DNA of 48,251 nt from Octopus sinensis. Lineage: Eukaryota. The notes beneath the pieces were generated by a model. That model worked only from the letters and a program-made list of their open reading frames with translations. It had not been told where the DNA came from and ran no database searches. Both the position numbers and the translations under genes were made by a program. Shown piece after piece: positions 3,736 through 48,251 of this stretch (positions are counted from its first letter, which is position 1; each line of letters opens with the position of its first letter). The stretch lies in assembly GCF_006345805.1 (NCBI RefSeq), contig NW_021834146.1, forward strand, positions 1-48,251, written 5' to 3'.

Positions 3736-3775
<40 letters not shown>

Positions 3776-4093: not shown

Positions 4094-4307
4094 CTGTGAG
4101 AAAATCAAGAAAACGACTTTCCATTAACAATGTGTTTCGAATACGTAATTAGCTTTAGGTGTAATTACACTAATTATTTCGCTTAACAAATTTTTGAATG
4201 CTACTCTTGCTTCTATTTCTTCTGTTGTTTCTAGCTTAGCATTGAAGCAGTAACTTTTATTATCTATGCCGCTCCAAATATGACCGCGGGATCTATTGCT
4301 ATTACTT

Positions 4308-4865: not shown

Positions 4866-5063
4866 TATTATTATTATATTATTATTATTTATTATTATTT
4901 ATTTTTATTATCATTATTTTTATTATTATTATTATCATTATTATTATTATTACTATTTTTATTATTATTATTATTATTCTACCACCACCACCACTACTAC
5001 TCCTACTACTACTACTTCTACTACTACTAATACTACTACTATCAAAAGCGATTTGAATATTAC

Positions 5064-5292
5064 CTGTTGGCACTGCTATTCTCTTGTTCTGTCTCGGTCA
5101 GAACCTCCTCTGGTATGTTTAACAAATTGTTGATACTACGAAGAGAGTGGTTCAAAGTTATATTGGCCGACACAGTCGATACAAGTGGCACCATTTTCTC
5201 GTGAAGGTCTACAGCCAATTCAACATCTTCTTTGAAATACACTGGTTTCTGGGATACATCTAAAATCTCCTCCAAAGTACTGTCGATGTTTC
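5064..5292 (-). CDS. Exon, helical GAIN subdomain A-like (NIDSTLEEILDVSQKPVYFKEDVELAVDLHEKMVPL...TEQENSSAN)
   Basis: Acceptor-like ttttccatttcag at 5293 and donor AACAG|gtaata. 229 nt, phase 1-2. The frame is also open further upstream through the Thr-rich tract, so the true 5' boundary is uncertain. Confidence 0.8.
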
Positions 5293-5339
5293 CTGAAATG
5301 GAAAATTTAACATGAAATTTAAGGGAATTACAGTTGCTC

Positions 5340-7355: not shown

Positions 7356-7709
7356 CTATACAAAATAAGGAGAAAACATTTTTGCCCTCGGTTAATTGGT
7401 ATAATTAAAAAGAAAATGAGCAAAGACAGACAGTTCCGTAGGGACAAGAAACGGAAAAGTACAAAATAAAATGCTGATTTATTGAAGTTATCCAAGCTTT
7501 GAGAAAATGTAAATAAATAGTTGTATGTATGAGAGAGAGGGAGAGTCTGTGTGCGTGCGTGTGATCATGCGCGCGTGTGCGTGCGTGTCCTATGGTATCA
7601 TCCACTGTGGTTGATGATGATGACAACGACGAAGAGGATGGTAATGGTGATTGACGAAGCTAATTATGACGGTAATGGTGATAAAATTAATAAGAAACAC
7701 GATACTTAC

Positions 7710-7826
7710 GTTCATCAGTGAATTTCATGTGGCTTTGCCTAACTCCTATGTTAAGCAATGCCTGGGATTTGTTCAAAACTTGGGAGATATTGCGCCGCAG
7801 TTGACTTTCAGTCATTTCGCTAAATA
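7710..7826 (-). CDS. Exon (FSEMTESQLRRNISQVLNKSQALLNIGVRQSHMKFTDE), possibly part of a SEA-like module
   Basis: Acceptor tactgtacag and donor c|gtaagt. 117 nt, phase 1-1, no stops. Confidence 0.7.
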
Positions 7827-7996
7827 CTGTACAGTAAATATCAAATATTTTAATTCTGTTTGAGCTGAAATAAAAATAAATACATACATGTATGTCGGTA
7901 TGTATATGTGTATGTAGATAGCTAGCTAGCTAGCTAGATAGATAGCTAGATAGATGGAAGCATACATACATTGATATATATATAATTATATATATA

Positions 7997-10315: not shown

Positions 10316-10390
10316 CATAGAGATAGATAAATAGAAAGATAGGTAGATAGATAGATATAGACCAACAGACAGACAGACAGACAGATAGAT

Positions 10391-10451
<61 letters not shown>

Positions 10452-10505
10452 GGGATAGATAGATAGACAGACAGACAGACAGGATAGACAGACAGACAGA
10501 CAGAC

Positions 10506-10574
<69 letters not shown>

Positions 10575-10634
10575 GAGGGATAGATAGATAGACAGACAGA
10601 CAGACAGGATAGACAGACAGACAGACAGACAGAC

Positions 10635-10700
<66 letters not shown>
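10316..10700. repeat. (GATA)n/(GACA)n compound microsatellite
   Basis: Directly visible. Confidence 0.97.
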
Positions 10701-10701
<1 letters not shown>

Positions 10702-13693: not shown

Positions 13694-13752
<59 letters not shown>

Positions 13753-13800
13753 GTATGCATGTGTATGTGTGTGTGTATATGTATATATATATAATATATA

Positions 13801-14514: not shown

Positions 14515-14620
14515 TGCATGTGTATATACGCTTATAAGTATGTGTTTATTATATATTATGTATATGTACTCATTCTTGTATGGGTGAGCCTTCTCTGATA
14601 TTCATATTTAGATTGTACTT

Positions 14621-14979: not shown

Positions 14980-15378
14980 TTCGTGCTACCACAAAGAGAG
15001 AAGAGCAAAGACTGGTAACGGCTCAAGGAGCCATGGAAAGGTCAATGCTTGGTATCTCGTTGTGAGAGCACATCAGTAGCGAGATCATCAGAAAGAAGTC
15101 CGGCGTGAGAGATGTCATCGCAGAGTATACACGCAGCAAGTTTAGATGGGCTGGACACGTCGCCCGGCTCACCGATAATCGGTGGACCCACGCAGTTGCC
15201 GAATGGTACCCACGCGAGCGGAAAATACCACCCGGAAGACCTCCACGACGGTGGAGTTACGATTTCAGGAGGACGATTAGGATCACGTGGATGAGAAAGG
15301 CACGATCCAGAGAGGAGTGGACAGCGTGCTGTGACCAGCGGTGTCAAATGGACGCCTGACGGACTGGTCGGTCAAGTG
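14980..15378 (+). mobile_element. RTE-clade LINE 3' fragment inserted in (TA)n
   Basis: KFRWAGHVARLTDNRWT...WYPRERKIPPGRPPRRW is a typical RTE C-terminus. Confidence 0.85.
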
Positions 15379-16321: not shown

Positions 16322-16879
16322 AGAGTATGTAGGGAATCAAATAATAAATGCATACGCATATAATACTTATCTGTATATTTGAATTTAACATGTATTTACA
16401 AATGTATGTATTTATGTGTTTAAACTGATCAGGCTAAACTTTAAGATACCTGTTATCATTTAACAAAATCGATATTAATATCTACTAAACGTATTGAGCT
16501 CACTATTTAAATTGACGTTTTGCATTTCTTGTATAAAATATGCATGTGTGCGCGTATTCAGTGCGTGTGTGTGTGTTCGGAGAAAGAGAGTGAAGATATC
16601 TACTCACGGCTCTTGATATGTTCTCAGCAGGGATTTTATATTCGTTGAACTTTTTAATAATCAAACGAAATACGAAGGATTTGGTCCAGCCTATGGATTG
16701 ATATAGAAAATAATCGCTGCGTTTATAAATGAGACACACGTTATAAATGCACATAAAACCCACATACGTAGATAAAAATACACGTTCATAATTACATATA
16801 CACTTAAAAATACTATATTTAATTATATATAGGGAGAATTCACAAAAAAACAAAAGACGAAGACAGGTCACTAGCAAGG

Positions 16880-20342: not shown

Positions 20343-20471
20343 CACACTCTTGCACACACGTATACACACATCAAAATATTTCCATTATAGTAACTATTAT
20401 TCAATATTCTTATTAACTATCAATTTGTAATAAATCTGGTGGTGTTATATTAGACAATAAATAACACTTAC

Positions 20472-20655
20472 CATTGAAATAATTCTTGTTACATAAGTGT
20501 CCGACGCAACAACCAGTACAAGACGTGCTATTCGTCCGTTTATTGCATGTAAGGGTATTGTTTCTCATAGCTTCAACACATTTTCTGTATGTGCTGCAGG
20601 ACCTTTCAGTCTTCAGTTTAACACCGTTCATTGATATTGCGAATCGGCATACTGG
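20472..20655 (-). CDS. Exon: second part of the three-finger (Ly6/uPAR-like) domain (PVCRFAIS...CTGCCVGHLCNKNYFN)
   Basis: Acceptor tattattacag and donor g|gtaagt. 184 nt, phase 0-1, with the CC-x4-CN terminus. Confidence 0.9.
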
Positions 20656-22082
20656 CTGTAATAATAGATATGAAAATTATACACTACAACCAAAATATTT
20701 ATTAGTACGATTACTGCTCATTACATCAAAGCAGTTTATATGAAAATACGATATATTAGTATAAAATTTGGAGAGAAAACAAGCAAGATGTTGTTAACTT
20801 AATGAGGGACATTCTGAAAACGGAAAATATCAGAAGTGGAGAAGAATATTTAAAGAAAAGAATCCATCACGAAAACGCAATTAATAATCGCAAACACCTA
20901 ACAATAATAAAAGTAATGAAAATGTAGACATTGAAGTTAGAAATAATATATTTGTTGCCTTAATTTGAAATTGAATCTCGTTTCTTCCAATCACGGAAAA
21001 GTTTTAGAAAGAAAATTGGATCTCCCAAACTGAGTGAGGATGTCATGAAAAAATGACCAATGATAGCGTCGGTAGGCTGGCGTCTTCAAAAAAGCCAATG
21101 AAGTCGGTGATTGCAAATGAATGAATCTTTAAATAAACTAACTCAGCTTCAGGAAAACGGAAAGGTCTGAGATCAGAACAGACAATAAAACAGGCAACAG
21201 AATTCAGCCATGCTCTTATGTCACGCTCTATTCTCCTATATTCTCGTAGATAAGTTAATGTGAAGCATTGATCTATGATATTACCGGTGTCTTTTATTGT
21301 TTCTCTTGTGTTTCTTTCGCCTATGTACAACTGTGTATTCAGAGATATGCCTGACAATTTTAATTTGAGTTTTAGCTGCGTTTTAAAGGTATAGGTTTTA
21401 CCTTTCTATGAAACAATATGGCCCTCACCTATTATGTTCTGGAGAGCGTATTGTACTACTTGATGTGAGGGAAGATTTAATCTGTTTCGAATATTTCATA
21501 ACCTCGAATATCAAACAACCTCTTTGGCTATGGCCAACAGACGAAGGAAAACTGTCATTTGCTTCTTAACTTATTCAATCCGCTCCGTGTAATGTTTGCG
21601 AACTGGTAGGGCCAGGTTGACTTCTAGTTATCCCCTCTAAGGTTAGTGACCAGAGGTCATTCGACAAGGAACCTTGATTCCAAGTTGACTTCTGGCCACA
21701 TACATTCATGCATCCTCCTCTAAGGACAGCCATGTTTGTCGGAGAAAGGTCACTCTAAGTTCGTGTGTTCGTTTCTTGAATATGGATTCCTGGACAGGGT
21801 AGAACGTTGTGTCCTTGAACAAGGCACTTCATTCCACTTTCTTCCAGTCAAATCAAGTGAAATGTGTCTCAACCTCGTGATGTTCATCTATTTCTCTCTT
21901 CAATCGTCACATCCTTGTCCCATTGTGTCATGAATAAGAAGATCGATAGGGTGTGTATATGTCTAAGCAGGCACATAAAAAACTAACGAAAGCATAGTAC
22001 AATCTATGTGGACTTAATGGCTTTCGAGTGACGGCTGCGGATATATTTTAACGAAAAGGAAGAAAGTAATATTCCAGTTTAC

Positions 22083-22174
22083 CTCTGCTCCTGGACATCT
22101 TGTCACTTCTAGATCATTGCACTTATTTCCTGAACATGTTTGACACTGTAAATGCCGTTGATATAACGAGTAAT
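22083..22174 (-). CDS. Exon: first part of the three-finger domain (YSLYQRHLQCQTCSGNKCNDLEVTRCPGAE)
   Basis: Acceptor ttgtattctgtag and donor GAG|gtaaac. 92 nt, phase 1-0, with the LxCxxC start. Confidence 0.9.
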
Positions 22175-22853
22175 CTACAGAATACAAGTAAATATCTGTA
22201 TTTATGAACCAAATAATGCAATGCATAGCAATAACAGGAAATAATTTTCTTTATGATGTAAAAAAAATGTATACGCGTTACTATTGAAATCAATACATGT
22301 TAGACATATAAAACAAAATATTAACAAAGACTATAAACCTATTTTTATGTTCATTTGGAATTGTTTCAATAATGTCACAAATTCAACTGAGAGAAGCATG
22401 AAAGCCTCTTGTTGTCCTTTTAGTATTCTGATGTAACAAACATGTGAAAATCGTTGAACAAGTCAAATAAAGTGATGAAATTCGAAAACTGCAAGCATTA
22501 TTGCAGTGGGAACTCCCTAATAAAACCTGAGAATCTCATTTAAGTTATGCTGCAATGTCATATAGAATGTGAAGAAGGGCATAAAATGTGAAGTGAGCAA
22601 AACAATATTTGGATGAACAATAAATAATATGATCACTAATATGGTGTTTTTTCCAATATATATACGTTTATGTGCGTATGTATATATGTATGTATGTAAA
22701 GGTTTTAGTTGCCAATCCTGTAAAAGACATTGTAGATATTTAGCTGGGCTAAAAAGTCACATTCGATCACAGCACCAGTAACAGTTAAGCTTCGTGCAAT
22801 GGCCATACTCGATAACGAGGGGGAAGCCATAATAATTTATGTATGTAATTATG

Positions 22854-26390: not shown

Positions 26391-26999
26391 GGATCGAATA
26401 CTGGAACATTTTTTGTGTCTCGGGAGGGTCATTAAGCCAATAATAAACATACGTACTGGTTCTATTTCACTTTATTATTCGTCTCTTTGTTAACAATTTG
26501 TTAACGAATTAACTAAATGAATGTTTGATTAACCGTTTGGTTAACCTATCAACCAGTTATGGTTGTTAGCGACATTTTGTTGTCATTCGTGACCGCTTCG
26601 ATGACTCATTTGTTTTCGTTCTATACTTATGTAGTTATGAATGAGAATGTACGTGAGAGAGAGGGTTAGAGAGTATGTCTGTGTGCATATGTGTGTGTAC
26701 ATGTGAGCGTACATTCATGTGTGCGCTGTTGTGTATGTTTGTGTATGTGTGCGTGCGCGAGTTCCCGTGTGTATGTGTGTGTGTGTGTGCCGTTGATGGC
26801 TTGTGTGAGACAGTTGAATCTGTAATTTCGTTAGAGCGAAGATGTGAATGTAAAGCGTGCGAATGGTAAAACGTTTATTCCTCATATCTTTATCTATAGT
26901 TTCCCTTTCATAAGACATGATATTGTAAGCTTCAGAGAGTAACCCGGATTTTCTTAGTGTTAATAATAAAAGAAAAGAAGAAACGAGAATTTTACTTAC

Positions 27000-27157
27000 T
27001 TTGACATTGTGAATAATCCAGTATAAGTATTCGTTTCCCTGAGCCTTCCTGACACGTGCCAGAGACAGCCACAGTTCTGTTATAGACTTTTTTAATATAC
27101 TTAACGAAGGCTGGCAAGTGACATCCACACTTCATAAGGTTATTGTCTTGGAGGTAA
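27000..27157 (-). CDS. Exon: last LRR plus LRR C-terminal cap (YLQDNNLMKCGCHLPAFVKY...SGTC...DYSQCQ)
   Basis: Acceptor ttattattacag and donor a|gtaagt. 158 nt, phase 2-1, with the N-x3-CxC...C...C LRRCT pattern. Joins exons 33779-33708 and 22174-22083 in frame. Confidence 0.9.
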
Positions 27158-28642: not shown

Positions 28643-31497
28643 ATTCTTAATGAAATCAGCAAACAATCAACGCTACTGAGCAACAAAAAGAGAACAAAAA
28701 TGCTCCGCAAATATAACATCACAGAAAAGATTTGCCGGAGATAAAAGAAAAGCTGAAGCAAGATATCCTTGCCAAAGCTCAAAGGATCCGCCAGTACGAG
28801 AACGCCAACGCTTCTTTGAACAGAACAAAAGTTCAACTCCAACCCCAAAAAGTTCTACCAAGAACTGGGAAAAAATAAAATAGAAGTCACTGCAGCACCA
28901 ACGGCAGAAGAATTGGAAGAATTCTGGAGAGAAATATGGTCGGCGAACGAACAGCCAAAAAAAGGAGTATCAAAATAACAAACTCGGCATCTGAACAACT
29001 TTGGACCCCCATAACAACTGAAGAGGTCACCCAGGCACTGCAAAACTAAGCAACTGGAAGGCACCTGGGCATGACAAGATCCCCAACTTCTGGTTGAAAT
29101 ATCTAACAGGAATGCACAAAAAGCTGGCTGAAAACTTTAACAGCATACTAGCAGAGCCAGAGACAATGCCTGAATGGCTCACGAAAGGGAAAACCATCTT
29201 AATTCCCAAATCAAATGAAACAGCAAAACCAGAAAACTACAGACCAATAACCTGCCTCCCTACTATGTTCAAGGCATTTACTGCAGTGATATCGCAAAGG
29301 CTGAACAAGCACTTGGACGAAAACAAACTGTTCCCAGAAGAGCAGAAAGGATGCCGCAAAGCCTCATATGGCTGTAAAGATCAACTAATGATTAATAAAG
29401 CCGTAACTGAAGACAGCCACAGAAGAAGAAAGGCCTCAGTATGGCCTGGATTGACTACAAAAAGGCGTTTGATAGCATCCCCCACACATGGATCCTCGAA
29501 ACACTAGCCATTAACAAAGTAGCACCAACAATCATAAAATTCATAGAGCACTCTATGAATAAATGGCAAACAGTCCTACACCTCCAAACAAAAGAGGGAC
29601 TCATGAAAACCAAAGACATCCCCATTAGAAGAGGAATATTCCAGGGAGACACGCTCTCTCCACTCCTTTTCTGCTTGGCACTGTCACTCTATCTGATATG
29701 CTAAATAGAACTGGATGCGGATATAAATGTTACGCGCAAAACGATCAGCCACCTTTTATATATGGATGACCTAAAACTATACGCTGCAAATGACAAACAG
29801 CTGGAAACACTATTAAAGACAGTTCATGGATTTACCAAAGAATAGATATGAAATTTGGATTAGAAAATGCGCCAAATTAACCATGAAAAGAGGAAAACTA
29901 GTTAAGAGTAACAACATCACACTAGATAAAACCAATGAAATAAAAGAATTATACCAAGCCAAACTTACAAATACTTAGGAATCCATGAACTAGATAAGAC
30001 ACAACACACACAAATGAAAGAGAAAATAAAAAAGAATATTATAGACGAGTTAGATCAATACTAAAAACAGAGCTCAATGCTAAAAACAAGATAATAGGTA
30101 TCAACACTTTAGCTGTCCCAGTTTAAGTTACAGCTACAATATCCTTAACTGGACACGAATGAACTGACCAAATAGATAGGAAAACAAGAAAAATACTGAC
30201 AGGATCTAGGATGCATCACCCAAAATCTGACATAGAAAGACTATATATACAACGTATAGAAGGTGGTAGAGGCCTTATACAGCTGGAAAACTACTATAAA
30301 ATAACCACCATAGGACTGCAAAAATATCTACTTCAGAAGGAAGGAAAACTGATCCAGATAGCAGCAAAACCGAGCAAAACAAAAAACTGTTCTCAGTATT
30401 TAAGGAAGCTGACAAATACAACACAAGAAATCATACCACCTAATAAACATGAGAAGAAGAAGAAGAAGAAGAAGAAGAAGAAGAAGAAGAAGAAGAAGAA
30501 GAGAAGAAGAAGAAGAAGAAGAAGAGAAGAAGAAGAAGAAAAAGAAGAAGAAGAAGAAGAAACAACAAAAGCTATAAAACAAATGAAATCCAAACTAAAA
30601 ATAGAACAGCAACGAACCATGATAAACGATGGCAAGAAAAGCTCCTTCATGGTAAATACTGGACTAAACTAAACGCAAAAGAAATAGACAAAGAAAAATC
30701 CCAGCAATGGTTGAGAAGCTCAGTACTCAAAGCAAAAACAGAGGGATTTTTAATTGCAGCACAAGACCAAAACCTCCCCACCAGAAATTACCAAAAACAT
30801 GTAATGAAAAGAAATATTACAAGTAACTGCAGAATATGTGGAGATGGACAAGAAACAATAAATCATATTATCTCTAGCTGCCCAGTCCTGGCTAAGAAGG
30901 AATATATTCACAGACATGACAGAGTTGGAACCTACATACATTGGAAGCTATGCCAACATTATGGAATAACAACAGAAAAAAAAAGGTATAGGCACACACC
31001 AGAAAAGGTCACAGAAAACGAGAAAGCAACCATACTCTGGGATATGCCAATACACACAGATAGAGAAATTAAGGCCAACAGACCAGATATAGTTGTCAGA
31101 GATCATGAAAACAAAAATGTTTTCTAATTGATGTATCAATACCAGCGGATGACAACGTGTTTATAAAAGAAATGGAGAAACTTTCAAAATACAAAGACCT
31201 GGAAATAGAGGTAACTAGAATGTGGAATCTAAAAACAGAAACAATTCCTATCATAATAGGTGCATTAGGCATGATAAAAAATATTCAGACAAATACATAA
31301 CAAAAACAAAACACACCATTACTTACAACACACATAACATACAGAAAATTGCACTACTAGGCACTGCACACATCCTGCGCAGAACCTTCCATACAATAAC
31401 CATCAGAGCATCACAACAAATCACAGCACATACCCAAGGCACACAGAGCTGTGCTCGGTAGTGAAGTGAAAGCACGATATAAAAAATATACTACTGA
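28643..31497 (+). mobile_element. R4/Dong-clade non-LTR retrotransposon (RT + CCHC + restriction-like endonuclease), 5'-truncated and frameshifted
   Basis: NYRPITCL, EQKGC, WIDYKKAFDSIPH, GIFQGDTLSP, YMDDLKLYA, CRIC...HIISSC...RHD and RPDIV motifs. It has a (TAA)n tail, a (TAA)n 5' flank and an internal GAA tract at 30451-30560. Confidence 0.92.
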
Positions 31498-33707: not shown

Positions 33708-33779
33708 ATATTAACTATACTGGGGAGGAATAAGAAAGCGCCATCTTCATATTTTTCTATTGGGTTGTTTTGCAAATAT
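33708..33779 (-). CDS. LRR exon (YLQNNPIEKYEDGAFLFLPSIVNI)
   Basis: Acceptor gtctctttttcag and donor at|gtaagc. Exactly 72 nt, phase 2-2. Confidence 0.88.
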
Positions 33780-35997: not shown

Positions 35998-36221
35998 CGA
36001 GAAGAAGAAGAAAGAAGTTGAAGAGTAAAAAGAAATAGAAAGAAGGTGAAGAGGAAAAAAGAAGCAGTACAACAAGAAGGAGAAGAAGAAGTAGTAGTAG
36101 AAGAAGGAGGAGAAGAAATAAAAAAAGAGTAGAAGAAGAAGAAAAAGAAGAAACAGAAGAAGAAAAAGAAGAAGAAAACGAAGAAGAAAGAGAAGAAGAA
36201 GAAGAAGAAGACGAAGAAAAA

Positions 36222-36252
<31 letters not shown>

Positions 36253-37633
36253 GAGAAGATGACGAAGATGAAGAAACGAAGAAAAAGAAGTAGAAGAAGA
36301 AGATGAAGATGAAGAAGGAGAAGATGACGAAGATGAAGTAGAAGAAGAAGAAGAAGAAAAAGGAGGAGAAGAAGAAGAAGAAGAAAAAGGAGGAGAAGAA
36401 GAAGAAAAAGAAGAAGAAGAAGAAGAAGAAGAAGAAGAAGAAGAAGACATTAATAATCGTAGTGTTCAAGAAGATAAATAGAAAATGTAGTCAAAGAAAT
36501 AACAGGAGATATTTTAGGGAGACGGAAGAAACGTTTGAGGGAGAGAACATGAAAGAAGAAAAATGAAGGAGGAGACTAAGGAGGCAAAGGAGACGAGGGC
36601 GAAAAAGAAGACGAAGAAGAGAAAGATTTGGAAGATGAAGAAAAAGAAGGATAAGGAGAATTAGAAGAAGAAGAAGGAGAAGAAGAAGAAGAAGAAGAAG
36701 AAGGAGAAGAAAAAGAAGAAGAAAAAGAAGAAGAGAAGAAGAAGAAGAAGAAGGGAAAGAAGAAGAAGAATGAGTAGGACACAAAAGCAAAAGAACAAGA
36801 ATAGGGAGAAGGACGAGGAGGAAGAGGGCAGCTTGAGGTGGAGGAGGGGATTTGAAGGAGGAGGAGGAAAAAAGAAGATGAGGAGAGGGAGAAGAGAAAA
36901 GGAGAGGGGAGGAGAGGAGAGGAGAGGGGAGAAGGGTGGATGAGAGGGGAGGGGATGGCAGAGGAGGTGGAGGAAGAGGAGATTCGGGGGATGAATGAGA
37001 AGTGAAGGATAAGGAAGGAGAAATGTGAAGAAGCAGAAAGCACGGGAGTAAGTTTATCAAAAAAGAGAAGAGGACGAAAAAGAAGGAGAAATGTAGAAGA
37101 AGAAGAAGGGGATGACGAGGAAAAAGTAAAAGAAGAAAAAAGAAGAAGAAGAAGGAGAAGAAAAAAGAAGAAGAAGAATAGAAGAAGAAGAAGAAGAAGA
37201 AGAAGAAGAAAGAAGAAGAAGAAAATAATAAGAAGAAGAAGAAGAAGAAGAAGACATTAATAATCATAGTGTTCAAGAGATTAAATAGAAAATGTAGTCA
37301 AAGAAATAAACGGAGATATTTTAGGGAGACGGAAGAAACGTTTGAGGGAGAGAACATGGCTGAAAACTCAGGGAATACAAATTTAATACAAATTTAAATA
37401 CAAATCGTTGAAATTTGGGAATCCAAAATGAGTTAAAGTGTCAAGAATTGAAACAAAGCAACTGCAATAAAGGAACATTAAATTTGTCCTTTTATTTCAA
37501 ATTCTCTCTCCATTCCTCCCTCTTTCTCTCATTGTGTCTTGCTCTCTTAATCCCACTTTGTATTTCCTAAATCATGTCCGGTTCCCGAGTTTGTTTGGTG
37601 CATGTCCGAGAGTTTATACGGTTAAGAGTGTAT

Positions 37634-38659
37634 AGTTAGTTAGTTAGTTAGTTAGTTAATTTGGCTCAAAAGCAAATTGCAAGGCCATGTAGGGGGACAT
37701 GGAGTTAAGTATAGGGTGGTGTTCATGTAAAGAATTCAGGCCACTTGAGGTCCAGGGAGGCTTTGAACAAAGCGGTCGTCGGCATCTTCACCATCTCGTC
37801 TGGCAGCTTGTTCCACGGATCCGCAACCCGGACGGTGAAATCTCCTGTCCTTCGACTAAGATGAAATCGTCGCAGGTAGAGCTTTTCGGAATGACTCCGC
37901 AGCCGACGCTCTGGAGCATGAGTGAAGAACAGCTCTTTCGAGATGCTGTATGTCTTTGAGGAGATAAGGAGAAGAGGCTTGAATCCCATACTCCAATATG
38001 GGTGTCACCAGCGTGACATAGAGTGGTAGGAATATGGCTGCCGTGAGCATTCCGAATGACCGTCGAATCAAGAACAGAATTCCGCGTGCTTTGTTGGCAG
38101 CATGGACGCACTGGACCGAAGGCGAAAAGGAGGAATCCACCAAGATACCCAGGTCCTTTACCTGATCGGTCCTCTCCAGCAGCAGACGACCCGGCTCGAA
38201 ATCAAGTTGAGTTGCAGGAGTAGAGCCGACAGGCAGATGACAGCACTTTGACACGTTCAGACACAGGTCCCAATCGTTAGACCACTTCCAAATTTGGTGG
38301 AGGCATCGACGAAGATCCTCTATATTACCGCGAGGAGCGACCAGTTTGATATCGTCGGCAAATAGAAGGGTGTGTTGCGTGAGGTCGTCGGGCAAGTCAT
38401 TTATGAAGACTAAGAACAACAAGGGCCCAAGCACTGAACCTTGAGGCACGCCACTGCTCGCACTGGAGACTTCGGACCGCGAACCATTTACTTGGACTTG
38501 GAAGGAGCGATCTGAGAGGAAGGCACCAACCCATCGTACAATATCCGGATGGAAACTATATGCTTGAAACTTGACAAGTAATAGGCGGTGGTTTACCGAG
38601 TCAAAAGCTTTGGCAAAGTCCAATAAAACGATGTCAACAGCATCACTATCATCGAGGAT
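37634..38659 (-). mobile_element. CR1-like LINE 3' fragment, copy 1
   Basis: LDFAKAFDSV, SGVPQGSVLGP, FADDIK and WNKLP motifs, a (TAAC)n tail and an internal deletion after KDIQHLER. Confidence 0.92.
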
Positions 38660-38745
38660 GCGCGTCACCAATTCTTCCATTACTAGTATATATCATCATC
38701 AAATATTACTTTCAAACAGAGTATCAGGAAACTGAACGAACTTAC

Positions 38746-38817
38746 AATGTCTTTAAATTCTTAAACCGCGTGAATATACCTTGTTTGATGGTTGAAATGT
38801 TGTTGGCACCAAGATAC
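38746..38817 (-). CDS. LRR exon, type A (YLGANNISTIKQGIFTRFKNLKTL)
   Basis: Acceptor ...tactgcaacag and donor tt|gtaagt. 72 nt, phase 2-2. Confidence 0.88.
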
Positions 38818-39409
38818 CTGTTGCAGTAAAGAACGAGTAAAAATTATTAAATGGGAAAATATTTGTGATACTACAAAAAGAAGAAGAAGAAGAAGAAGAA
38901 GAAGAAGAAGAAGAAGAAGAAGGAGAAGGAGAAAAAGAAGAAGAAGAAGAGAAGAAGAAGGAGAAGAAGAAGAGAAGAAGAAGAAGAAGAAGAAGGAGAA
39001 GAAGAAGAAGAAGAAGAGAAGAAGAAGAAGAAGAAGAAGAAGAAGAAGAAGAAGAATCAGGCGAAATTATTTCATGGAAGTGTGGACAAATAACCACACG
39101 GCACCACAGAATAAAGAGAACAATGTGAAACAAACAACAGTAGAATATACATAAGTATTATATTAACACTGCAGACACACTCATACATATATGAACATAC
39201 ACGTTTTCAGGAATAAACTTTTGATGCAGACAATTATCAACAGATAGTCATTGTCATGTTCAGACACAATCAAATAAATATAGCACGAATATGAAAAGTG
39301 ATTATGACTTCAAGTAATAGGGAGTGAGAACAAATAGAAATCAGGGAATATTTAAATTAAAGACACATTATATTCCTCATGTATAAACGACAACATTGAA
39401 AGGACTTAC

Positions 39410-39481
39410 AGATTTTGTAAGCTGTGAAGGTCTTGAAACGTTACTTTCTCAACGTTCGAAATTTTATTGTTCTGAAGATTT
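39410..39481 (-). CDS. LRR exon, type B (NLQNNKISNVEKVTFQDLHSLQNL)
   Basis: Acceptor tttcctgcttcag and donor ct|gtaagt. 72 nt, phase 2-2. Confidence 0.88.
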
Positions 39482-40670
39482 CTGAAGCAGGAAAAAATGT
39501 TGCTTATTTTGACGTAGTATGGAATTGCAATAAAATATGAAATATTGTTCGTTTTGTATAGGAAGAAAACCATAGGAAAATAAAATGACAAGAAGAAGAT
39601 GAAGAAGATGAAGAGGAAGGAGAAGAAGAAGAAGAAGAAGAAGAAGAAGAAAAAGAAGAAGAAGATGAAGAAAAAGAAGAAGAAGAAGAAGGTAGAGGTG
39701 GAGGAGGAGAGGAGAAGAAGAAGAGGAGGAGGAGGAGGAGGAGGAAGAAGAAGAGAAGAAAAAGAAGAAGAAAAGAAGAAGAATAAAAGAAGAAGAAGAA
39801 GAAGAAGAAGATAGAGGAGGAGGAGGAGGAAAAGAAGAACCAGGTGGAGAGAAGAAGAAGAAGAAGTAGAAGATGAAGAAAACGAGAAGGTAGAAGAGGA
39901 GGAGCATGAGGTAAGGAGGAGGAGGAGGAGGAGGAGGAGGAGGAGGAAGAAGAAGAGAAGAAAGAAGAAGAAGAAAAGAAGAAGAAAGAAGAAGAAGGAG
40001 GAGGAGAAGAAGAAGAGAAGAAGGAGAAGAAGAAAAGAAGAAGAGAAGAAGAAGAAGAAGGAGAAGAAGAAGAAGAAGAAGAAGAAGAAGAAATAGATGA
40101 TTAAGAATAGTATTAGAGGAAGAAGAAAAAAGAGATGAGAGGTGTTAAGAAGAAGAAAAAGAAGAGAAGAAGAAGAAGACGAAGAAGAAGAAGAAGAAAG
40201 AAGAAGAAAAGAAGAGAAGAAGAAGAAGAAGAAGAAGAAAAAGAAAAGAAGAAGAAGAAGAGAAGAAGAAGAAGAGGAGAAGAAGAAGGAGAAAAAGAAG
40301 AAGAAATAAGAAGAAGAGAAGAAGGAGAAGACGAAGAATAGAAAGATACGGAAGAAGAAAAGAAAGAATTAGAAGAAGAAGAAGAAGAAGAAGAAGAACA
40401 ACAACAACAACAACAACAACAACAATAACAAAAACCACAAGAGAAAGGAGAAGGAGAAGAAGAAGAAGAAGAAGAAGAAGAAGAAGAAAAAGAAGAAGGA
40501 AGAGGAGGAGGAGAAGAAGACCGAGAAGAAGAAGAAGAAGAAGAGTAAAACGGGGAGGAGGAGAAGAAGAAGAAGAAGAAGAAGAGGAAAAAGAAGAAGA
40601 AGAAGAAGAAAAAGAAAATGAAGGAGGAGGAGATGAAGGAGGCAGAGGAGACAGGGGAGATAAAGAAGAT

Positions 40671-40702
<32 letters not shown>

Positions 40703-41112
40703 AGAAGGAGAAGACGAAGAATAGAAAGATACGGAAGAACAAAAGAAAGAATTAGAAGAAGAAGAAGGAGAAGAAGAAGAAGAAGAAGAAGAAGAAGAAG
40801 AAGAACAACAACAACAACAACAACAACAACAATAACAAAAACCACAAGAGAAAGGAGAAGAAGAAGAAGAAGAAGAGAAGAAGAAGAAGAGAAGACGAAG
40901 AATAGAAAGATACGGAAGAAGAAAAGAAAGAATTAGAAGAAGAATAAGGAGAATAAGAAGAAGAGGAAGAAGAAGAAGAAGACAACAACAACAACAACAA
41001 CAATAACAAAACCACAAGAGAATGGAGAAGAAGAAGAAGAAGAAGAATAATAAGAAGAAGAGGAAGAAGAAAAAAGAAGAAGAAGAATAAGAGAAGAAGA
41101 AGAAGAAGAGAA

Positions 41113-41144
<32 letters not shown>

Positions 41145-41821
41145 GAAGAAGAAGAAGAAAGAAGAAGAATAGAAGAAGAAGATAAAACAATGTTGCTTAG
41201 TTTGACATAGTATGGAATTGGCAAAATATATTAAATATTGTTCTTTATGTACAGGAACAATATTATACGAAAATATAAGAAAGATAAGATGAAGAAGAAG
41301 AGAAGAAGAAGAAGAAGAAAGAAGAAGAAGAGAAGAAAAAGAAGAGAAGAAGAAGAAGAAGAAGAAGAAGAATAGAAGAAGAAGAAGGAGAAGAAGAAGA
41401 AGAAGAAGAAGAATAGAAGAAGAAGAAGAAGAAGAAGAAGAAGAAGAAGAAGGAGAAGAAGAAGAAGAAGAAGAAGAAGAAGAAGAAGGAGAAGAAACAA
41501 ATATAAACTAATGGATTGATTTTGTCACATTTCAAATAAAAATCGTTGAAATTTGAGGTGCAAAATCGAAGTGAAACAAAGCAACTGCAATAAAGGAACA
41601 TAAAATTTTTCCTATTATTTCATGTTCTCTCTCAATTTTTCACACTTTCTCCCACTATGTCTCGCACTCTTTCTCCCTATTTGTATCTTCCAAACTCCTG
41701 TTCGGTCCCCAAATTTGAATTGATTTTGCTTATTGCAGTCAGAAAGTTCATACATTTGTGATATATATATCAGCATTATTTATTATTTCAGAATTATTAT
41801 CAAGAAACTGAACGAACTTAC

Positions 41822-41891
41822 AATGTCGTCAAATTCGAAAGCCCATTGAATATACCTTGTTTCAAGCTGAAATTTGTTGCTGTCAAGATCT
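41822..41891 (-). CDS. LRR exon, type A', 70 nt (restores to DLDSNKISALKQGIFNGLSNLTTL)
   Basis: Splice sites are intact, but the exon is two nt short of 72 and both gaps fall in homopolymer runs relative to its paralogues. Confidence 0.7.
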
Positions 41892-43653
41892 CTATAGAAG
41901 TAAAGAAGAGTAAAATAAATTATACAGAAAATATTTGTGATGAAGCGTCAAACAATATGGATTTAGAATGAAAGGAAAAAAAAAAAGACATATACAGTAC
42001 AAGAAGAGAAGAAGAAGGAGACGAAATAAGACGAGGAGGAGGAGAGGAGGGAGGAGAAAGGGGGAGGAAAGAAGAATAAAATGAAGATGGAGGAGGAGAG
42101 AGGACGAAGAGGGGGATAGAGAATGCGGGGAGAAGGAGTAAAATGAGGGTGAAGTAGGAGAGGCGAGGAGGAGAGAGCAGGAGAGATGAGAGGAGGGGCA
42201 GAATGGGCAGGAGGAGGAGGCGAATGAGAAAAAGAGAAACAAGTAGAAGAGAAAGAAAAAGAAGGAGGAAATTAAAGGAGCAGAATGTACGGGAGTAAGT
42301 TTATGAAAAAAAGAGTAGAAGAAGAAGGAGAAGAAGAAGAAGAAGAAGAAGAAGAAAAGAAAAGAAGAAGAAGAAGAGGAAGAAGAAAAAAAAGAAGGAA
42401 GAGGAGGAGGAGGAAGAAGAAGAGGAGGAGGAGGAGGAGGTGGATGAGGTGGAGGAAGTGTAGAAGAAGAAGCAGGTGTGGAGGAGGAGATGAAAAGGAA
42501 GAAGACGTAGAAGAAGATGAAGAAGAAGAACGAGGAGTTAGAAGAGGAGGAGCATGAGGTAAAAAGGAGGGAGGAGGAGGAGGGCAATGATGCGAGGAAG
42601 AAGAAGAAGAAGAAGAAGAAGAAGATGAAGAAAAACGAGAAGGTAGAAGAGGAGGAGCATGAGGTAAAGGAGGAGGAGGAGGAGGAGGAGGAGAATGGCG
42701 ATGATGCGAGGAAGAAGAAGAAGAAGAAGAAGAAGAAGATAAAGAAGAAAAGAAGAAGAATAGAAGAAGAAGGAAGAGGAGAAGAAGAAGAAGAAGAAGA
42801 AGAAAGAGAAGGAGAAGAAGGAGAAGAAGGAGAAGAAGAAGAAGAAGAAGAAAAAGAAATAGATGATTAAGAATAGTATTAGAGGAAGAAGAAGAAAAAG
42901 AGATGAGAGGTGTTAAGAAGAAGAAAAAGAAGAGAAGAAGAAGAAGAAGAAGAAGAAGAAGAAGAAGAAGAAGAAAAAGAGAAAAAAGAAAAGAAGAAGA
43001 AGAAGACGACGAAGAGAAGAAGAAGAAGAAGAAGAAGAAGAAGAAGAAGACGAAGAAGATGAAGAAGAAGAAGAAGCAGAAGAATAAGAAGACATATTTG
43101 AACAAGCATGAAGTATAAGAAGAAATTTAGAAGAAGAAGAAAAGACATGAGAGGAGGTAAATAAGAATAAGAAGAAGAAAGAAGAAGAAGAAGAAGAAGA
43201 AAGAAGAAGAAGAGAAGAAGAAGAAGAAGAAAGAAGAAGGATTGAAGAAGTAGAAGAAGAAGAAGAAGAAGAAGACATTAATAATCATAGTGTTCAAGAA
43301 GATTAAATAGAAAATGTAGTCAAAGAAATAAACGGAGATAATTTAGGGAGACTGGAGAAACGTTTGAGGGAGAGAACATGGCTGAAAACTCAGGGAATAC
43401 AAATTTAATACAAATTTAAATACAAATCGTTGAAATTTGGGAATCCAAAATGAGTTAAAGTGTCAAGAATTGAAACAAAGCAACTGCAATAAAGGAACAT
43501 TAAATTTGTCCTTTTATTTCAAATTCTCTCTCCATTCCTCCCTCTTTCTCTCATTGTGTCTTGCTCTCTTAATCCCACTTTGTATTTCCTAAATCATGTT
43601 CGGTTCCCGAGTTTGTTTACTGCAGTCCGAGAGTTTATACGGTTAAGAGTGTA

Positions 43654-44959
43654 TAGTTAGTTAGTTAGTTAGTTAATTTGGCTCAAAAGCAAATTGCAAG
43701 GACATGTAGGGGGACATGGAGTTAAGTATAGGGTGGTGTTCATGTAAAGAATTCAGGCCACTTGAGGTCCAGGGAGGCTTTGAACAAAGCGGTCGTCGGC
43801 ATCTTCACCATCTCGTCTGGCAGCTTGTTCCACGGATCCGCAACCCGGACGAAGAAATCTCCTGTCCTTCGATTAAGATGAAATCGTCGCAGGTAGAGCT
43901 TTTCGGAATGACTCCGCAGCCGACGCTCTGGAGCAGGAGTGAAGAACAGCTCTTTCGAGATGCTGTATGTCTTTGAGGAGATAAGGAGAAGAGGCTTGAA
44001 TCCCATACTCCAATATGGGTCTCACCAGCGTGACATAGAGTGGTAGGAATATGGCTGCCGTGAGCATTCCGAATGACCGTCGAATCAAGAACAGAATTCC
44101 GCGTGCTTTGTTGGCAGCATGGACGCACTGGACCGAAGGCGAAAAGGAGGAATCCACCAAGATACCCAGGTCCTTTACCTGATCGGTCCTCTCCAGCAGC
44201 AGACGACCCGGCTCGAAATCAAGTTGAGTTGCAGGAGTAGAGCCGACAGGCAGATGACAATTATCAACAGATAGTCATTGACATGTTCAGACACAATCAA
44301 ATAAATATAGCACGAATATGAAAAGTGATTATGACTTCAAGTAATAGGGAGTGAGAACAAATAGAAATCAGGGAATATTTAAATTAAAGACACATTATAT
44401 TCCTCATGTATAAACGACAACATTCAAAGGACTTACAGAGTTTCTAAGCTGTGAAGGTTTTGAAACATTACTTTCTCAATGTTCGAAATTTTATTGTTCT
44501 TAAGATATCTGAAGCAGGAAAAACTTTGACACGTTCAGACACAGGTCCCAATCGTTAGACCACTTTCAAATTTGGTGGAGGCATCGACGAAGATCCTCTA
44601 TATTACCGCGAGGAGCGACCAGTTTGATATCGTCGGCAAATAGAAGGGTGTGTTGCGTGAGGTCGTCGGGCAAGTCATTTATGAAGACTAAGAACAACAA
44701 GGGCCCAAGCACTGAACCTTGAGGCACGCCACTGCTCGCACTGGAGACTTCGGACCGCGAACCATTTACTTGGACTTGGAAGGAGCGATCTGAGAGGAAG
44801 GCACCAACCCATCGTACAATATCCGGATGGAAACTATATGCTTGAAGCTTGACAAGTAATAGGCGGTGGTTTACCGAGTCAAAAGCTTTGGCAAAGTCCA
44901 ATAAAACGATGTCAACAGCATCACTATCATCGAGGATGCGCGTCACCAATTCTTCCATT
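43654..44959 (-). mobile_element. CR1-like LINE fragment, copy 2, split by a 263-bp insertion
   Basis: Same 5' truncation point and internal deletion as copy 1. Insertion at 44260-44522. Confidence 0.92.
44437..44508 (-). CDS. LRR exon, type B, inside the CR1 insertion (YLKNNKISNIEKVMFQNLHSLETL)
   Basis: 72 nt, phase 2-2, with ttttcctgcttcag and ct|gtaagt retained. Confidence 0.75.
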
Positions 44960-45023
44960 ACTAGTATATATCATCATCAAATATTACTTTCAAACAGAGT
45001 ATCAGGAAACTGAACGAACTTAC

Positions 45024-45095
45024 AATATCTTTAAATTCTTAAACCGCGAGAATATACCTTGTTTGATGGTTGAAATGTTGTTGGCACCAAGATAC
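45024..45095 (-). CDS. LRR exon, type A (YLGANNISTIKQGIFSRFKNLKIL)
   Basis: 72 nt, phase 2-2, canonical splice sites. Confidence 0.88.
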
Positions 45096-45637
45096 CTGTT
45101 GCAGTAAAGAACGAGTAAAAATTATTAAATGGGAAAATAGTTGTGATACTACAAAAAGAAGAAGAAGAAGAGAAGAAGAAGAAGAAGGAGAAGAAGAATG
45201 AGAAGAAGAAGGAGAAGAAGAAGAAGAAGAAGAAGAAGAAGAAGAAGAAGAAGAAGAAGAAGAAGAAGAGAAGAAGAAGAAGAATCAGGCGAAATTATTA
45301 CATGGAAGTGTGGACAAATAACCACACGGCACCACAGAATAAAGAGAACAACGTGAAACAAACAACAGTAGAATATACATAAGTATTATATTAACACTGC
45401 AGACACACTCATACATATATGAACATACACGTTTTCAGGAATAAACTTTTGATGCAGACAATTATCAACAGATAGTCATTGACATGTTCAGACACAATCA
45501 AATAAATATAGCACGAATATGAAAAGTGATTATGACTTCAAGTAATAGGGAGTGAGAACAAATAGAAATCAGGGAATATTTAAATTAAAGACACATTATA
45601 TTCCTCATGTATAAACGACAACATTCAAAGGACTTAC

Positions 45638-45707
45638 AGAGTTTCTAAGCTGTGAAGGTCTTGAAACATTACTTTCTCATGTTCGAATTTTATTGTTCTT
45701 AAGATAT
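45638..45707 (-). CDS. LRR exon, type B, 70 nt (restores to YLKNNKISNIEKVMFQDLHSLETL)
   Basis: Splice sites are intact. There are two 1-nt deletions in T runs relative to 44508-44437. Confidence 0.72.
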
Positions 45708-46931
45708 CTGAAGCAGGAAAAAATGTTGCTTATTTTGACGTAGTATGGAATTGCCATAAAATATGAATATTGTTTCTTTTTGTATAGGAAGAAAACCATA
45801 GAAAATAAAATGACAAGAAGAAGGTGAAGAAGATGAAGAGGAAGGAGAAGAGGAAGATGAAAAAGAAGAAGAAGAAGAAGACGAAGAAAGAAGAAGAAGA
45901 GATGAAGAGAAAAAGAAGAAAGAAGAAGGTAGATGAGGAGGAGGAGGAGAAGAAGAAGAAGAAGAAGGAGGAGAAGGAGGAGGAGGAGGAGGAGAGAGGA
46001 GAAGAAGAAAAAGAAGAAGATGAAAAAAAGAAGGAGAAGAAGAAGAAGAAGAAGAAAAAGGTATAGGAGGAGGAGGAGGAGGAGGAGATGGAGGAGGAGA
46101 TGGAGGAGGAGGAGGAGGAGGAGGAAAAGAAGAACCAGGTGGAGGAGAAGAAGAAGAAGAAGAAGAAAAAGAAGAAGACGTAGAAGAAGAAGAAGAAAAA
46201 AGAGAAGGTAGAAGAGGAGGAGCATGAGGTAAAGGAGGATGAGGAGGAGGATGGCGATGATGCGAGGAAGAAGAAGAAGAAGAAGAAGATAAAGAAGAAA
46301 AGAAGAATAGAAGAAGAAGGAAGAGGAGAAGAAGAAGAAGAAAAGAAGAAGAAAGAGAAGGAGAAGAAGGAGAAGAAGGAGAAGGAGAGAAGAAGAAGAA
46401 GAAGATAAAGATAAGAGAAGAAGTTGATTGAAGAAGAAGAAGAATCAGTAGAAGAAGAGAAGAAGAAGAAGATGGGATGAGGAGGAGGAGGAGGAGAAGA
46501 AGAAGAGAAGAAAAAAAGGAGAAGATGAAGAAAAAGAAGAAGAAGAAGAAGAAAAAAAAGGTAGAGGAGGAGGAGGAGGAGGAGGAAAAGAAGAACCAGG
46601 TGAGAGGAGGAAGAAGAAGAAAAGAAGAAAAGAAGAAGAAGTAGAAGAAGATGAAGAAAAACACGAGAAGTTAAGAGAGGAGCATGAGGTTAAAGGAGGA
46701 TGAGGAGGAGAGATGGCGATGATCGAGGAAGATAAGAAGAAGAAGAAGAATAAGAAATAAAGAAAGAAGAGAATAGAAGAAGAGGAAAGTGGAGAAGAAG
46801 AAGAAGAAGAGGAAGAAAAAGAGAAGAAAAGGAGAAGAAGGAGAGAAGAAGAAGAAGAAGGAGAAGAAGAAGAAGAAGCAGCATCAAAGTATACATTTAG
46901 ATAATAGTATTAAGAAAATGAACGAACTTAC

Positions 46932-47003
46932 AATGTTTTTAAATTCGAAATCCCCGTGAAGGTACCTTCTTCGATGGTTGAAATGTAGTTATCTCGCAGA
47001 TCT
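46932..47003 (-). CDS. LRR exon, type A'' (DLRDNYISTIEEGTFTGISNLKTL)
   Basis: Acceptor ctttactgctatag and donor tt|gtaagt. 72 nt, phase 2-2. Confidence 0.88.
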
Positions 47004-47624
47004 CTATAGCAGTAAAGAGTAAAATAAATTATGTGGAAAATATTTGTGATACATCAAACATTGTGGCTTTACAATGAAAGAAAGAAAAAGAAAAAAGATA
47101 ACGAAGAAGAAAAGAAGAAGAAGAAGAAAAAGAAGAAGAAGAAAATGAAGGAGGAGGAGATGAAGGAGGCAGAGGAGACAGGGGAGATAAAGAAGAAGAA
47201 GAAGAAGAAGAAGAAGAAGAAGAAGAAAGAAGAAGAAGAAGAAGAAGAAGACATTAGTAATCAAAGTGTTCAAAAGATTAAATAGAAAATGTAGTCAAAG
47301 AAATAAACGGAGATATTTTAGGGAGACGAAGAAACGTTTGAGGGAGAGAACATGGCTGAAAACTCAGGGAATACAAATTTAATACAATTTAAATACAAAT
47401 CGTTGAAATTGGGAATCCAAAATGAGTTAAAGTGTCAAGAATTGAAACAAAGCAACTGCAATAAAGGACATTAAATTTGTCCTTTTATTTCAAATTCTCT
47501 CTCCATTCCTCCCTCTTTCTCTCATTGTGTCTTGCTCTCTTAATCCCACTTTGTATTTCCTAAATCATGTTCGGTCCCGAGTTTGTTTACTGCAGTCCGA
47601 GAGTTTATACGGTTAAGAGTGTAT

Positions 47625-48251
47625 ATAGTTAGTTAGTTAATTTGGCTCAAAGCAAATAGCAAGGCCATGTAGGGGGACATGGAGTTAAGTATAGGGTGGT
47701 GTTCATGTAAAGAATTCAGGCCACTTGAGGTCCAGGGAGGCTTTGAACAAAGCGGTCGTCGGCATCTTCACCATCTCGTCTGGCAGCTTGTTCCACGGAT
47801 CCGCAACCCGGACGGAGAAATCTCCTGTCCTTCGATTAAGATGAAATCGTCGCAGGTAGAGCTTTTCGGAATGACTCCGCAGCCGACGCTCTGGAGCAGG
47901 AGTGAAGAGCAGCTCTTTCGAGATGCTGTATGTCTTTGAGGAGATAAGGAGAAGAGGCTTGAATCCCATACTCCAATATGGGTCTCACCAGCGTGACATA
48001 GAGTGGTAGGAATATGGCTGCCGTGAGAATTCCGAATGACCGTCGAATCAAGAACAGAATTCCGCGTGCTTTGTTGGCAGCATGGACGCACTGGGCCGAA
48101 GGCGAAAAGGAGGAATCTACCAAGATACCCAAGTCCTTTACCTGATCGGTCCTCTCCAGCAGCAGACGACCCGGCTCGAAATCAAGTTGAGTTGCAGGAA
48201 AGAGCCGACAGGCAGATGACAGCACTTTTTCACGTTCAGACACAGGTCCCA
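47625..48251 (-). mobile_element. CR1-like LINE fragment, copy 3 (runs off the window)
   Basis: Near-identical to copies 1 and 2, with the same internal deletion and no insertion at the homologous site (48211-48240). Confidence 0.92.

Follow-up and report, generated by a model that had tools for sequence, protein, structure and literature searches.

What makes young exon copies of a receptor gene diverge while the introns beside them stay almost identical? The question is raised by a 48,251-nt contig of Octopus sinensis (NW_021834146.1, GCF_006345805.1), the whole of which is referred to here as the window and which is the reverse complement of VCDQ01005865.1 (GCA_006345805.1). Its sequence is eukaryotic and rich in microsatellites and in fragments of long interspersed nuclear elements (LINEs), and the minus strand carries a leucine-rich repeat (LRR) gene, N-terminal exons included, for which NCBI gives the partial model LOC115230658 (P0089). 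An initial annotation, made from the letters alone, had noted that two pairs of LRR exon copies differ only by amino-acid-changing substitutions and had proposed strong diversifying selection on a newly amplified recognition surface. Comparison with related loci suggests, with a probability that we put at about 0.58, that the locus is the LRR-ectodomain part of an octopus adhesion G protein-coupled receptor (GPCR)-like gene under diversifying selection at its concave face, fed by exchange among LRR exons.

Results

Single-repeat exons

The solenoid encoded by this gene consists of alternating A-type and B-type repeats of 24 residues, with one 72-nt exon per repeat. The exon layout is 1 nt, 23 codons and 2 nt, with identical phase at both ends, and eight exons are bounded by AG...GTAAG. 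Therefore, units can be copied, lost or skipped with the frame unbroken. The same layout is present at the orthologous locus of O. vulgaris (L001, OX597843.1), in a paralogous O. sinensis array (L002, the gene of P0004) and on the chromosome-scale O. vulgaris record OX597827.1 (L004, the gene of P0030). A fourth comparison was provided by a twin contig from the O. sinensis assembly (L003, VCDQ01005852.1), which bears the NCBI partial model LOC115230659 (P0027). The xxLxLxx beta-strand positions form the concave, ligand-binding face of LRR solenoids, and the motif register, taken from the sequence and established knowledge of LRRs, puts repeat positions 22, 23, 1, 3 and 4 on xxLxLxx. A single-sequence AlphaFold2 model of the family protein P0023 has a mean confidence (pLDDT) of 50.8 overall and 70-87 in the LRR part, with strands every 24 residues from repeat position 23; reading the faces off this model was dropped because the strands are implausibly long and confidence is only moderate in the LRR part.

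Exon pairs in the window

Two B-type exons, B1 (39410-39481, minus strand; NLQNNKISNVEKVTFQDLHSLQNL) and B2a (44437-44508, minus strand; YLKNNKISNIEKVMFQNLHSLETL), differ at 7 of 72 nt. As the initial annotation had it, all seven changes are nonsynonymous (N>Y, Q>K, V>I, T>M, D>N, Q>E, N>T) and none is synonymous; equally, the A-type exons A1 (38746-38817, minus strand; YLGANNISTIKQGIFTRFKNLKTL) and A2 (45024-45095, minus strand; YLGANNISTIKQGIFSRFKNLKIL) differ at 2 of 72 nt, both nonsynonymous (T>S, T>I). Five of these nine changes fall at xxLxLxx positions, namely repeat positions 1, 3, 22 and 23, which are x of LxxLxLxxN (binomial p = 0.023), and the intact B copies differ mostly at these x positions. 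All differences in the window are single-nucleotide steps. Decay of CpG sites was ruled out as their cause, since two contig-specific changes in B1 create CpGs and destroy none.

The introns are far more alike. The earlier figure of about 99% intron identity stands, with 2 differences in 189 nt between 39221-39409 and 45449-45637, whereas the coordinates and the exon pairing behind it do not. The intervals originally compared (39221-39405 and 45451-45635) are 2 nt out of register and yield 129 mismatches, because two deletions in a further copy, B2b, had been missed; the true offset is 6228, and the near-identical intron flanks the frameshifted B2b, not the B2a exon that had been compared. The homologous flank of B2a itself comprises 15 nt upstream and 181 nt downstream and carries 2 differences from the B1 flank. 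In this contig, the B1 and B2a exons differ at 7/72 positions and their own flanks at 2/194 (Fisher p = 0.002-0.003). Measured against the 1.5% divergence of a co-duplicated LINE segment (17/1112), the Poisson probability is about 1e-4 for seven differences and about 0.005 for five, the number that is also found in the twin contig.

Exons outpace introns across the family

The generality of this pattern is the main result: tandem single-LRR exons of the octopus gene family diverge 3-8 times faster than their introns. The alignment of exon copies from other contigs and species, which the initial annotation had put forward as a check, shows the contrast recurring at both further arrays; only five of the seven B differences recur in the twin contig. 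In the O. sinensis paralogue array, two B exons differ at 13/72 positions and their flanks at 14/269 (p = 0.001), with 12.2 nonsynonymous (Nd) and 0.8 synonymous (Sd) differences. Four tandem A exons spaced by about 1.05 kb in the O. vulgaris array L004 have diverged by 8-18%, compared with 1.2-3.7% for 493 nt of flanking intron; all six exon pairs give Fisher p values from 0.024 to 2.6e-5, and ratios of nonsynonymous to synonymous changes run from about 5:1 to 11:2.

The changes are concentrated at defined positions. Among 40 distinct repeats from ten family proteins, entropy reaches 2.1-3.2 bits at repeat positions 1, 3, 4 and 23 and is at most 1.3 bits elsewhere, except for A-type position 14 at 2.0; positions 1, 3, 4 and 23, together with 22, are the x positions of LxxLxLxxN. 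When four young exon groups were pooled, with the twin's B1 as the conservative choice and minimum nucleotide changes counted, the enrichment on the concave face was present in this larger set: 24 of the 38 changes lie in the five concave codons, which are 5 of 23 (binomial p = 4.6e-8). Where introns were measured as well, as they were for three of the groups, change amounts to 0.51 per nucleotide at concave codons, compared with 0.08 at the other codons and 0.044 in introns. The concave codons differ from introns with an odds ratio of 23 (p = 7e-18) and the remaining codons only slightly (0.080 vs 0.044, p = 0.04). Mean pairwise nonsynonymous divergence (pN) at concave codons is 0.42-0.43, against a synonymous divergence (pS) of 0.17-0.25.

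The O. vulgaris array L004 occupies 565-3808, at the very start of OX597827.1, and the P0030 model omits an intact, in-phase exon at 1598-1669. In the O. sinensis paralogue array, a segment that shares 91% identity with the next unit contains an A-type copy, at about 13730-13800, whose frame is interrupted by a stop codon (YLYNSNIATIK*GTFTGLSNLKGL).

The twin contig

The twin contig (48,326 bp) has the same first and last bases as the window contig and is 99.4-99.6% identical to it. The two differ at 120 single-nucleotide variants (SNVs; 62 transitions and 58 transversions) and 177 indel columns, clustered in repeated segments at 10-12 kb, 14-16 kb and 38-43 kb of the window, with 5 SNVs at 39218-39453. 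NCBI annotates a separate partial gene on each, but the two contigs probably represent a single locus that entered the assembly twice, whether as haplotigs or through a redundant consensus. Block structure, an inserted patch that contains B2a, two frameshifted exon copies and five of the seven B differences are common to both. At window positions 39453 and 39440 the twin's B1 has A and T, so that it encodes I and M where the window has V and T; it resembles a B1 whose middle part is of the B2 kind. The five B differences shared by the contigs are four concave-face changes and one other. V10 and T14 of B1 in the window are either a rare polymorphism or a consensus error.

Origin and probable turnover of the exon copies

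A block of about 2.3 kb, comprising a B exon, an intron, an A exon, a LINE reverse transcriptase (RT) fragment and a further intron, was duplicated in the O. sinensis lineage, and its copies show about 1.5% substitution divergence. By self-BLAST, 44523-45284 matches 38245-39012 at 97.8% identity (11 mismatches in 768) and 43159-44259 matches 37136-38242 at 97.0% (17 mismatches in 1112). The first copy of the LINE RT fragment (37856-38680, minus strand, in block 37136-39012) is an uninterrupted open reading frame (ORF) of 274 amino acids (Pfam RVT_1, 3.5e-23). The second (43700-44958, minus strand, in block 43159-45284) is broken into ORFs at 43805-44128 and 44566-44958 by a 268-bp patch. A third, older intron-plus-LINE copy, 94% identical to the second by self-BLAST, lies at 47082-48221 (minus strand) and reaches the contig end.

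The patch itself (44256-44523, minus strand) consists of 15 nt of upstream intron, the B2a exon and 181 nt of downstream intron. Its source is the B2b region about 1.2 kb away (98.9% identity to 45457-45722 by self-BLAST), and it takes the place of GCA in the LINE RT ORF that is intact in the other unit. One junction shows a 4-nt microhomology (GACA). We infer that B2a arose by templated repair or template-switch insertion; the patch resembles the footprint of such an event, here one that created a spliceable exon copy.

Along the minus strand the order is A3, (GAA)n, B2b, A2, the LINE RT fragment with the B2a patch, intron and (GAA)n, Ax, a B-intron remnant, (GAA)n, B1, A1, the uninterrupted LINE RT fragment and intron. 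Exon A3 (46932-47003, minus strand; DLRDNYISTIEEGTFTGISNLKTL) is the first exon of both NCBI partial models and encodes the first 24 residues of P0089 and P0027. B2b (45638-45707, minus strand) is a B-type pseudo-exon of 70 nt, out of frame through two 1-nt deletions that alignment also finds in the twin; the earlier reading of 45636-45707 as an intact 72-nt exon is ruled out, and a version with the two bases filled in (B2b*) was scored for counting only. Ax (41822-41891, minus strand) is an A-type pseudo-exon, likewise of 70 nt, with a 2-nt deletion, shared by the twin, relative to its coding O. vulgaris orthologue A'; bounds of 41814-41885 were rejected. The Ax region is 91% identical to L001 15082-15929. 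At 41184-41494 (minus strand) there remains the intron that precedes B-type exons (83% identical to 39492-39811 and 84% to L001 14228-14538), next to (GAA)n and with its exon gone. Four of the copies (B1, A1, A2 and B2a) are thus intact, two (B2b and Ax) carry frameshifts and one B exon has been lost; all copies retain their splice sites (CAG or TAG acceptors, GTAAGT donors). Together with the stop-bearing A copy in L002, B2b, Ax and the B remnant show that inactivated exon copies remain in introns.

The two models use the copies differently. P0089, on this contig, joins A3-B2a-A1, and P0027, on the twin, joins A3-B1-A1; A1 is in both, A2 is used by neither, and never are both B exons taken together. 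That the annotated model skips B2a is therefore true of P0027 only, and was discarded as a general reading, since P0089 takes B2a and skips B1.

Tracts rich in (GAA)n stand between all units and were located with Tandem Repeats Finder (TRF). The longest spans 39590-41496, and others lie at 36000-36770, 38878-39056, 42317-43275, 45156-45284 and 45815-46878. Filling the introns as they do, these tracts probably favour unequal exchange between units.

The orthologous locus gives direction to the changes. L001 aligns to the window at 94-97.5% over unique downstream sequence and has one B exon (14549-14620) and one A' exon (15306-15377, the orthologue of Ax); it holds no LINE, and no exon of the A1/A2/A3 type lies within 14 kb upstream. 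Four B segments align cleanly. Polarised, B1 has the derived changes Y1N and T23N, plus I10V and M14T in this contig only; the B2 lineage has Q22E, to which B2a adds D17N, and codon 3 exists in three states (E, K and Q). In the flanking intron (about 270 nt) there is one derived change in B1 and there are three in B2. B2b is the copy closest to the single O. vulgaris B exon, with 2 substitutions. Between the two species the orthologous exons E4-E7 have a pN of 0.033 and a pS of 0.024; therefore, the whole ectodomain is at best weakly constrained. A', used by the O. vulgaris model, is frameshifted in O. sinensis as Ax, as is B2b, and the newer B1 and A1 are intact, a pattern that looks like turnover, with new copies replacing ancestral exons.

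Discussion

Selection, exchange and their alternatives

Taken together, these data point to diversifying selection as the most likely cause of a family-wide pattern in which concave-face codons change about ten times faster than introns, with the other exon codons near the intron rate. It is the best reading because drift of unused copies cannot exceed the neutral rate and the excess lies on ligand-facing codons. Gene conversion restricted to introns, which the initial annotation had itself named as a way out, finds no support: at the 54 non-concave exon nucleotides the similarity between copies is nearly that of the introns, and thus intron-limited conversion cannot explain the contrast. The diversity is probably fed by short sequence exchanges among the family's many LRR exons. 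Codons differing at more than one nucleotide in young pairs (AAG/GAC, TTA/GCA, TCA/GAA, CGG/TCC, AAC/GGC, AGA/AAC, GAA/ATA) and mosaics in L004 and in the twin's B1 suggest that much of the variation is passed from exon to exon in short conversion tracts and is not newly arisen. Such movement would still require selection to keep the diversity.

For the window itself the earlier claim has to be divided. Selection on a binding face is supported for the family, mainly by loci outside the window; a newly amplified recognition surface within it is not supported by the state of its copies. Two of these are frameshifted, B2a sits in a LINE fragment, neither model takes more than one B exon, and of the seven B differences two are specific to this contig. 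The window signal is thus best taken as weak and partly uncertain, a small instance of the family pattern and not an expressed, enlarged surface.

Several observations weigh against selection as the explanation. Seven nonsynonymous changes out of seven are not significant alone: with 57 nonsynonymous and 12 synonymous sites, (57/69)^7 = 0.26. The pair is a tiny sample and powerless for a ratio of nonsynonymous to synonymous rates (dN/dS), as Sd is 0 on 12 synonymous sites. V and T of B1, missing from the twin, sit at framework positions that are otherwise near-invariant in the family; with the twin's B1 the contrast of exon and flank falls to Fisher p = 0.021, and between the twin's B1 and B2b the exon differs at about 4/70 positions and the downstream intron at about 5/200. 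The flanking introns are 1.1% diverged between species, compared with a pS of 2.4%, and are possibly mildly constrained, in which case the exon/intron contrast would be overstated about twofold. P0089 and P0027 disagree on the B exon, and some of the compared copies may never be translated. Moreover, codon differences of two or three nucleotides in L002 and L004 fit the import of existing variants better than new point mutations, and all selection tests here rest on counts in short sequences and not on likelihood site models.

Some of these points would be expected if redundant or dead copies were drifting neutrally, with consensus errors added, and if the contrast in the window were a chance cluster chosen after the fact. 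The frameshifts of B2b and Ax, the position of B2a, the single B exon of each model and the clustering of twin differences in repeats, including those at 39218-39453, all fit this view, as does a gene-wide pN/pS of about 1.4 between species, which is compatible with relaxed constraint. Neutral drift, however, cannot beat the neutral rate, and the divergence of the exon is 5-7 times that of the co-duplicated LINE and intron. Moreover, four of the five twin-shared differences are on the concave face, and the pattern recurs at two other loci, one of them in a chromosome-scale assembly. We therefore regard drift as an unlikely account, albeit the one with most to be said for it among the alternatives. 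An artefact of assembly is the least probable of them. Haplotype merging or mis-polishing is a natural suspicion for a small, repeat-rich, unplaced 48-kb PacBio contig whose near-identical twin is annotated as a second gene, the more so as O. vulgaris has a single B and a single A' and the B2b deletions are 1-nt losses of the homopolymer type. Yet the features listed above as common to both contigs argue otherwise, the units are more than duplicated alleles, given that the patch is confined to one of them and that Ax and the B remnant lie in the spacer, and the chromosome-scale O. vulgaris assembly contains tandem exon arrays of a comparable kind.

A third alternative keeps the exchange and needs no positive selection on newly arisen mutations: existing variant codons would be imported into exons, and exons only, by ectopic gene conversion of short tracts among the paralogous LRR exons, and exons alone are alike between distant paralogues. 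The multi-nucleotide codons, the twin's B1 and the mosaic in L004, where codons 1, 4, 6 and 8 group the exons in a way that K/N at codon 11 contradicts, are what it predicts, and the family offers at least 40 distinct donor repeats. In the window, however, every difference is a single-nucleotide step, and a search of the window and L001-L004, related loci of about 230 kb in all, yielded no donor with the B1-specific ends, which does not settle the question. The standing diversity at concave codons must also be made and kept against homogenisation, which itself implies selection. Conversion as a full explanation thus seems rather improbable to us. Slightly more doubtful is a germline cassette system in which B1 and B2a (with A2) would serve as alternative or mutually exclusive exons and give one gene several binding faces; duplication, short exchanges and selection at concave codons would then keep renewing the cassette set. 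Such use is hinted at only by the differing choice of B exon in the twin models and by the many isoforms (up to X6) under which family members are listed. Functionally, it would resemble exon choice in Dscam and protocadherins or the variable lymphocyte receptor (VLR) cassettes of lampreys.

The gene and its family

By class, the gene is probably of the LRR / LRRCT / GAIN type and looks adhesion-GPCR-like. In minus-strand order its exons, placed by tblastn of P0027, are A3, one B, A1, the last LRR exon (33708-33779, minus strand, splice sites checked; YLQNNPIEKYEDGAFLFLPSIVN), the LRRCT exon (26998-27156), a cysteine-rich exon and others to 3889; those 3' of LRRCT lie on the minus strand at 22083-22175, 20470-20658, 16575-16691, 7708-7866, 5063-5314 and 3889-4101. 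The LRRCT-like exon, also on the minus strand (CGCHLPAF...), is conserved among homologues. The LRRNT cap lies beyond the contig end and is visible only in the paralogues P0004 and P0023 (Pfam LRRNT 0.0093, below cutoff). Matches to Pfam LRR_8 (1.5e-26 for P0027 and 1.6e-76 for P0023) identify typical extracellular repeats of 24 residues, LxxLxLxxNxL, and the best matches among solved structures are IGFALS (7wrq, 1.3e-78), TLR3 and LGR4/5. The GAIN match of the window product is weak (E = 0.0047, 16.8 bits vs a Pfam cutoff of 26.5), and no seven-transmembrane (7TM) segment is found in the window contig. The paralogue P0078, 89% identical in its C-terminal part, matches the GPS motif (1.5e-11) and, exactly at cutoff, the beginning of a secretin-type 7TM (7tm_2), and O. 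vulgaris paralogues are labelled 'adhesion GPCR G6-like' by NCBI. The window gene, whose contig holds no 7TM, is plausibly a member of the octopus-specific adhesion-GPCR kind of Ritschard et al. 2019.

At 22083-22190 the exon acceptor differs between the models, and P0089 carries seven residues more (IYLYSVD) than P0027. The exon at 20470-20658 encodes a cysteine-rich module of 63 residues ending in CCVGHLCN; it has no Pfam match at E <= 0.01, and we take the motif to resemble those of Ly6/uPAR three-finger domains. Introns of the gene hold two more non-LTR retrotransposon fragments with RVT_1 and zf-RVT matches, at 1716-3110 (minus strand) and 29094-31127 (plus strand). TRF also finds two tetranucleotide microsatellites of great length: (GGTA)n, at the contig end (1-1077), comprises about 271 copies, and (AGAT)n, at 10321-10701, about 96; the former is probably the reason for the contig stopping at that end.

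Comparison with known systems

The octopus gene shares its 24-residue LRR type with IGFALS, TLR3 and LGR4/5, and in LGR genes one LRR per exon of about 72 nt is the rule. Unlike the octopus gene, however, LGR, IGFALS and TLR3 genes are conserved and single-copy, without young intragenic exon duplicates or hypervariable faces. Coding parts of young paralogues are said to outpace introns, mostly by nonsynonymous changes, in the phospholipase A2 (PLA2) genes of snake venoms and in conotoxin genes; these are whole genes for secreted toxins with no repeat-position periodicity, whereas the octopus units are internal repeat exons of a receptor. In plant nucleotide-binding LRR (NLR) and receptor-like proteins, amino-acid changes reportedly concentrate on the solvent-exposed residues of xxLxLxx, and exchange of sequence among tandem paralogues of these resistance genes reportedly adds diversity. 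The positional pattern of the octopus changes matches that of the plant LRRs, but plant LRR domains mostly lie in one large exon, and the octopus unit of duplication and exchange is the single-repeat exon within one gene.

The closest described analogue of the octopus array is the ROCO LRR-GTPase family of the brown alga Ectocarpus. In these genes (Zambounis et al. 2012, PMC3341825), a 24-residue LRR is encoded per 72-nt exon, exon shuffling and duplication occur, introns contain LRR exons that have been inactivated, and the LRR exons are reported to be under diversifying selection. The likeness thus covers exon layout, dead exons and selection, and the contrast of intron and exon rates is what was measured in the octopus arrays. 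The ROCO proteins are cytoplasmic GTPases, whereas the octopus gene would encode an animal extracellular ectodomain, capped by LRRNT and LRRCT and joined to GAIN/GPS; also unlike Ectocarpus, no reverse-strand exon copies were seen in the octopus region.

Within cephalopods, the relevant portion of Ritschard et al. 2019 (PMC6408891) describes an octopus-specific, co-localised adhesion-GPCR expansion ('group 3'), with LRRs in 5 of 22 sequences, signatures of positive selection for a subset of co-localised receptors and expression in suckers, skin and axial nerve cord. That study concerned O. bimaculoides and C. minor, and the window gene is likened to group 3 by kind only. Arrays of one exon per LRR and a contrast between concave codons and introns are not described in that portion.

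Conclusions

The finding is moderately interesting at the level of the family and weak as a result of the single window. The locus also holds lessons about data quality: it is present twice in its assembly and counted as two genes, some of its apparent exons are dead, and the signal partly depends on which twin is read. Octopuses carry lineage-specific expansions of surface receptors, and here the LRR ectodomains are built of freely duplicating exons of one repeat each. If selection acts on these exons as we propose, the genes would be candidate receptors for rapidly changing recognition, whether of chemicals from prey, of microbes, of self or of neuronal partners, and the arrays would offer a clean natural system for how repeat proteins gain new binding faces.

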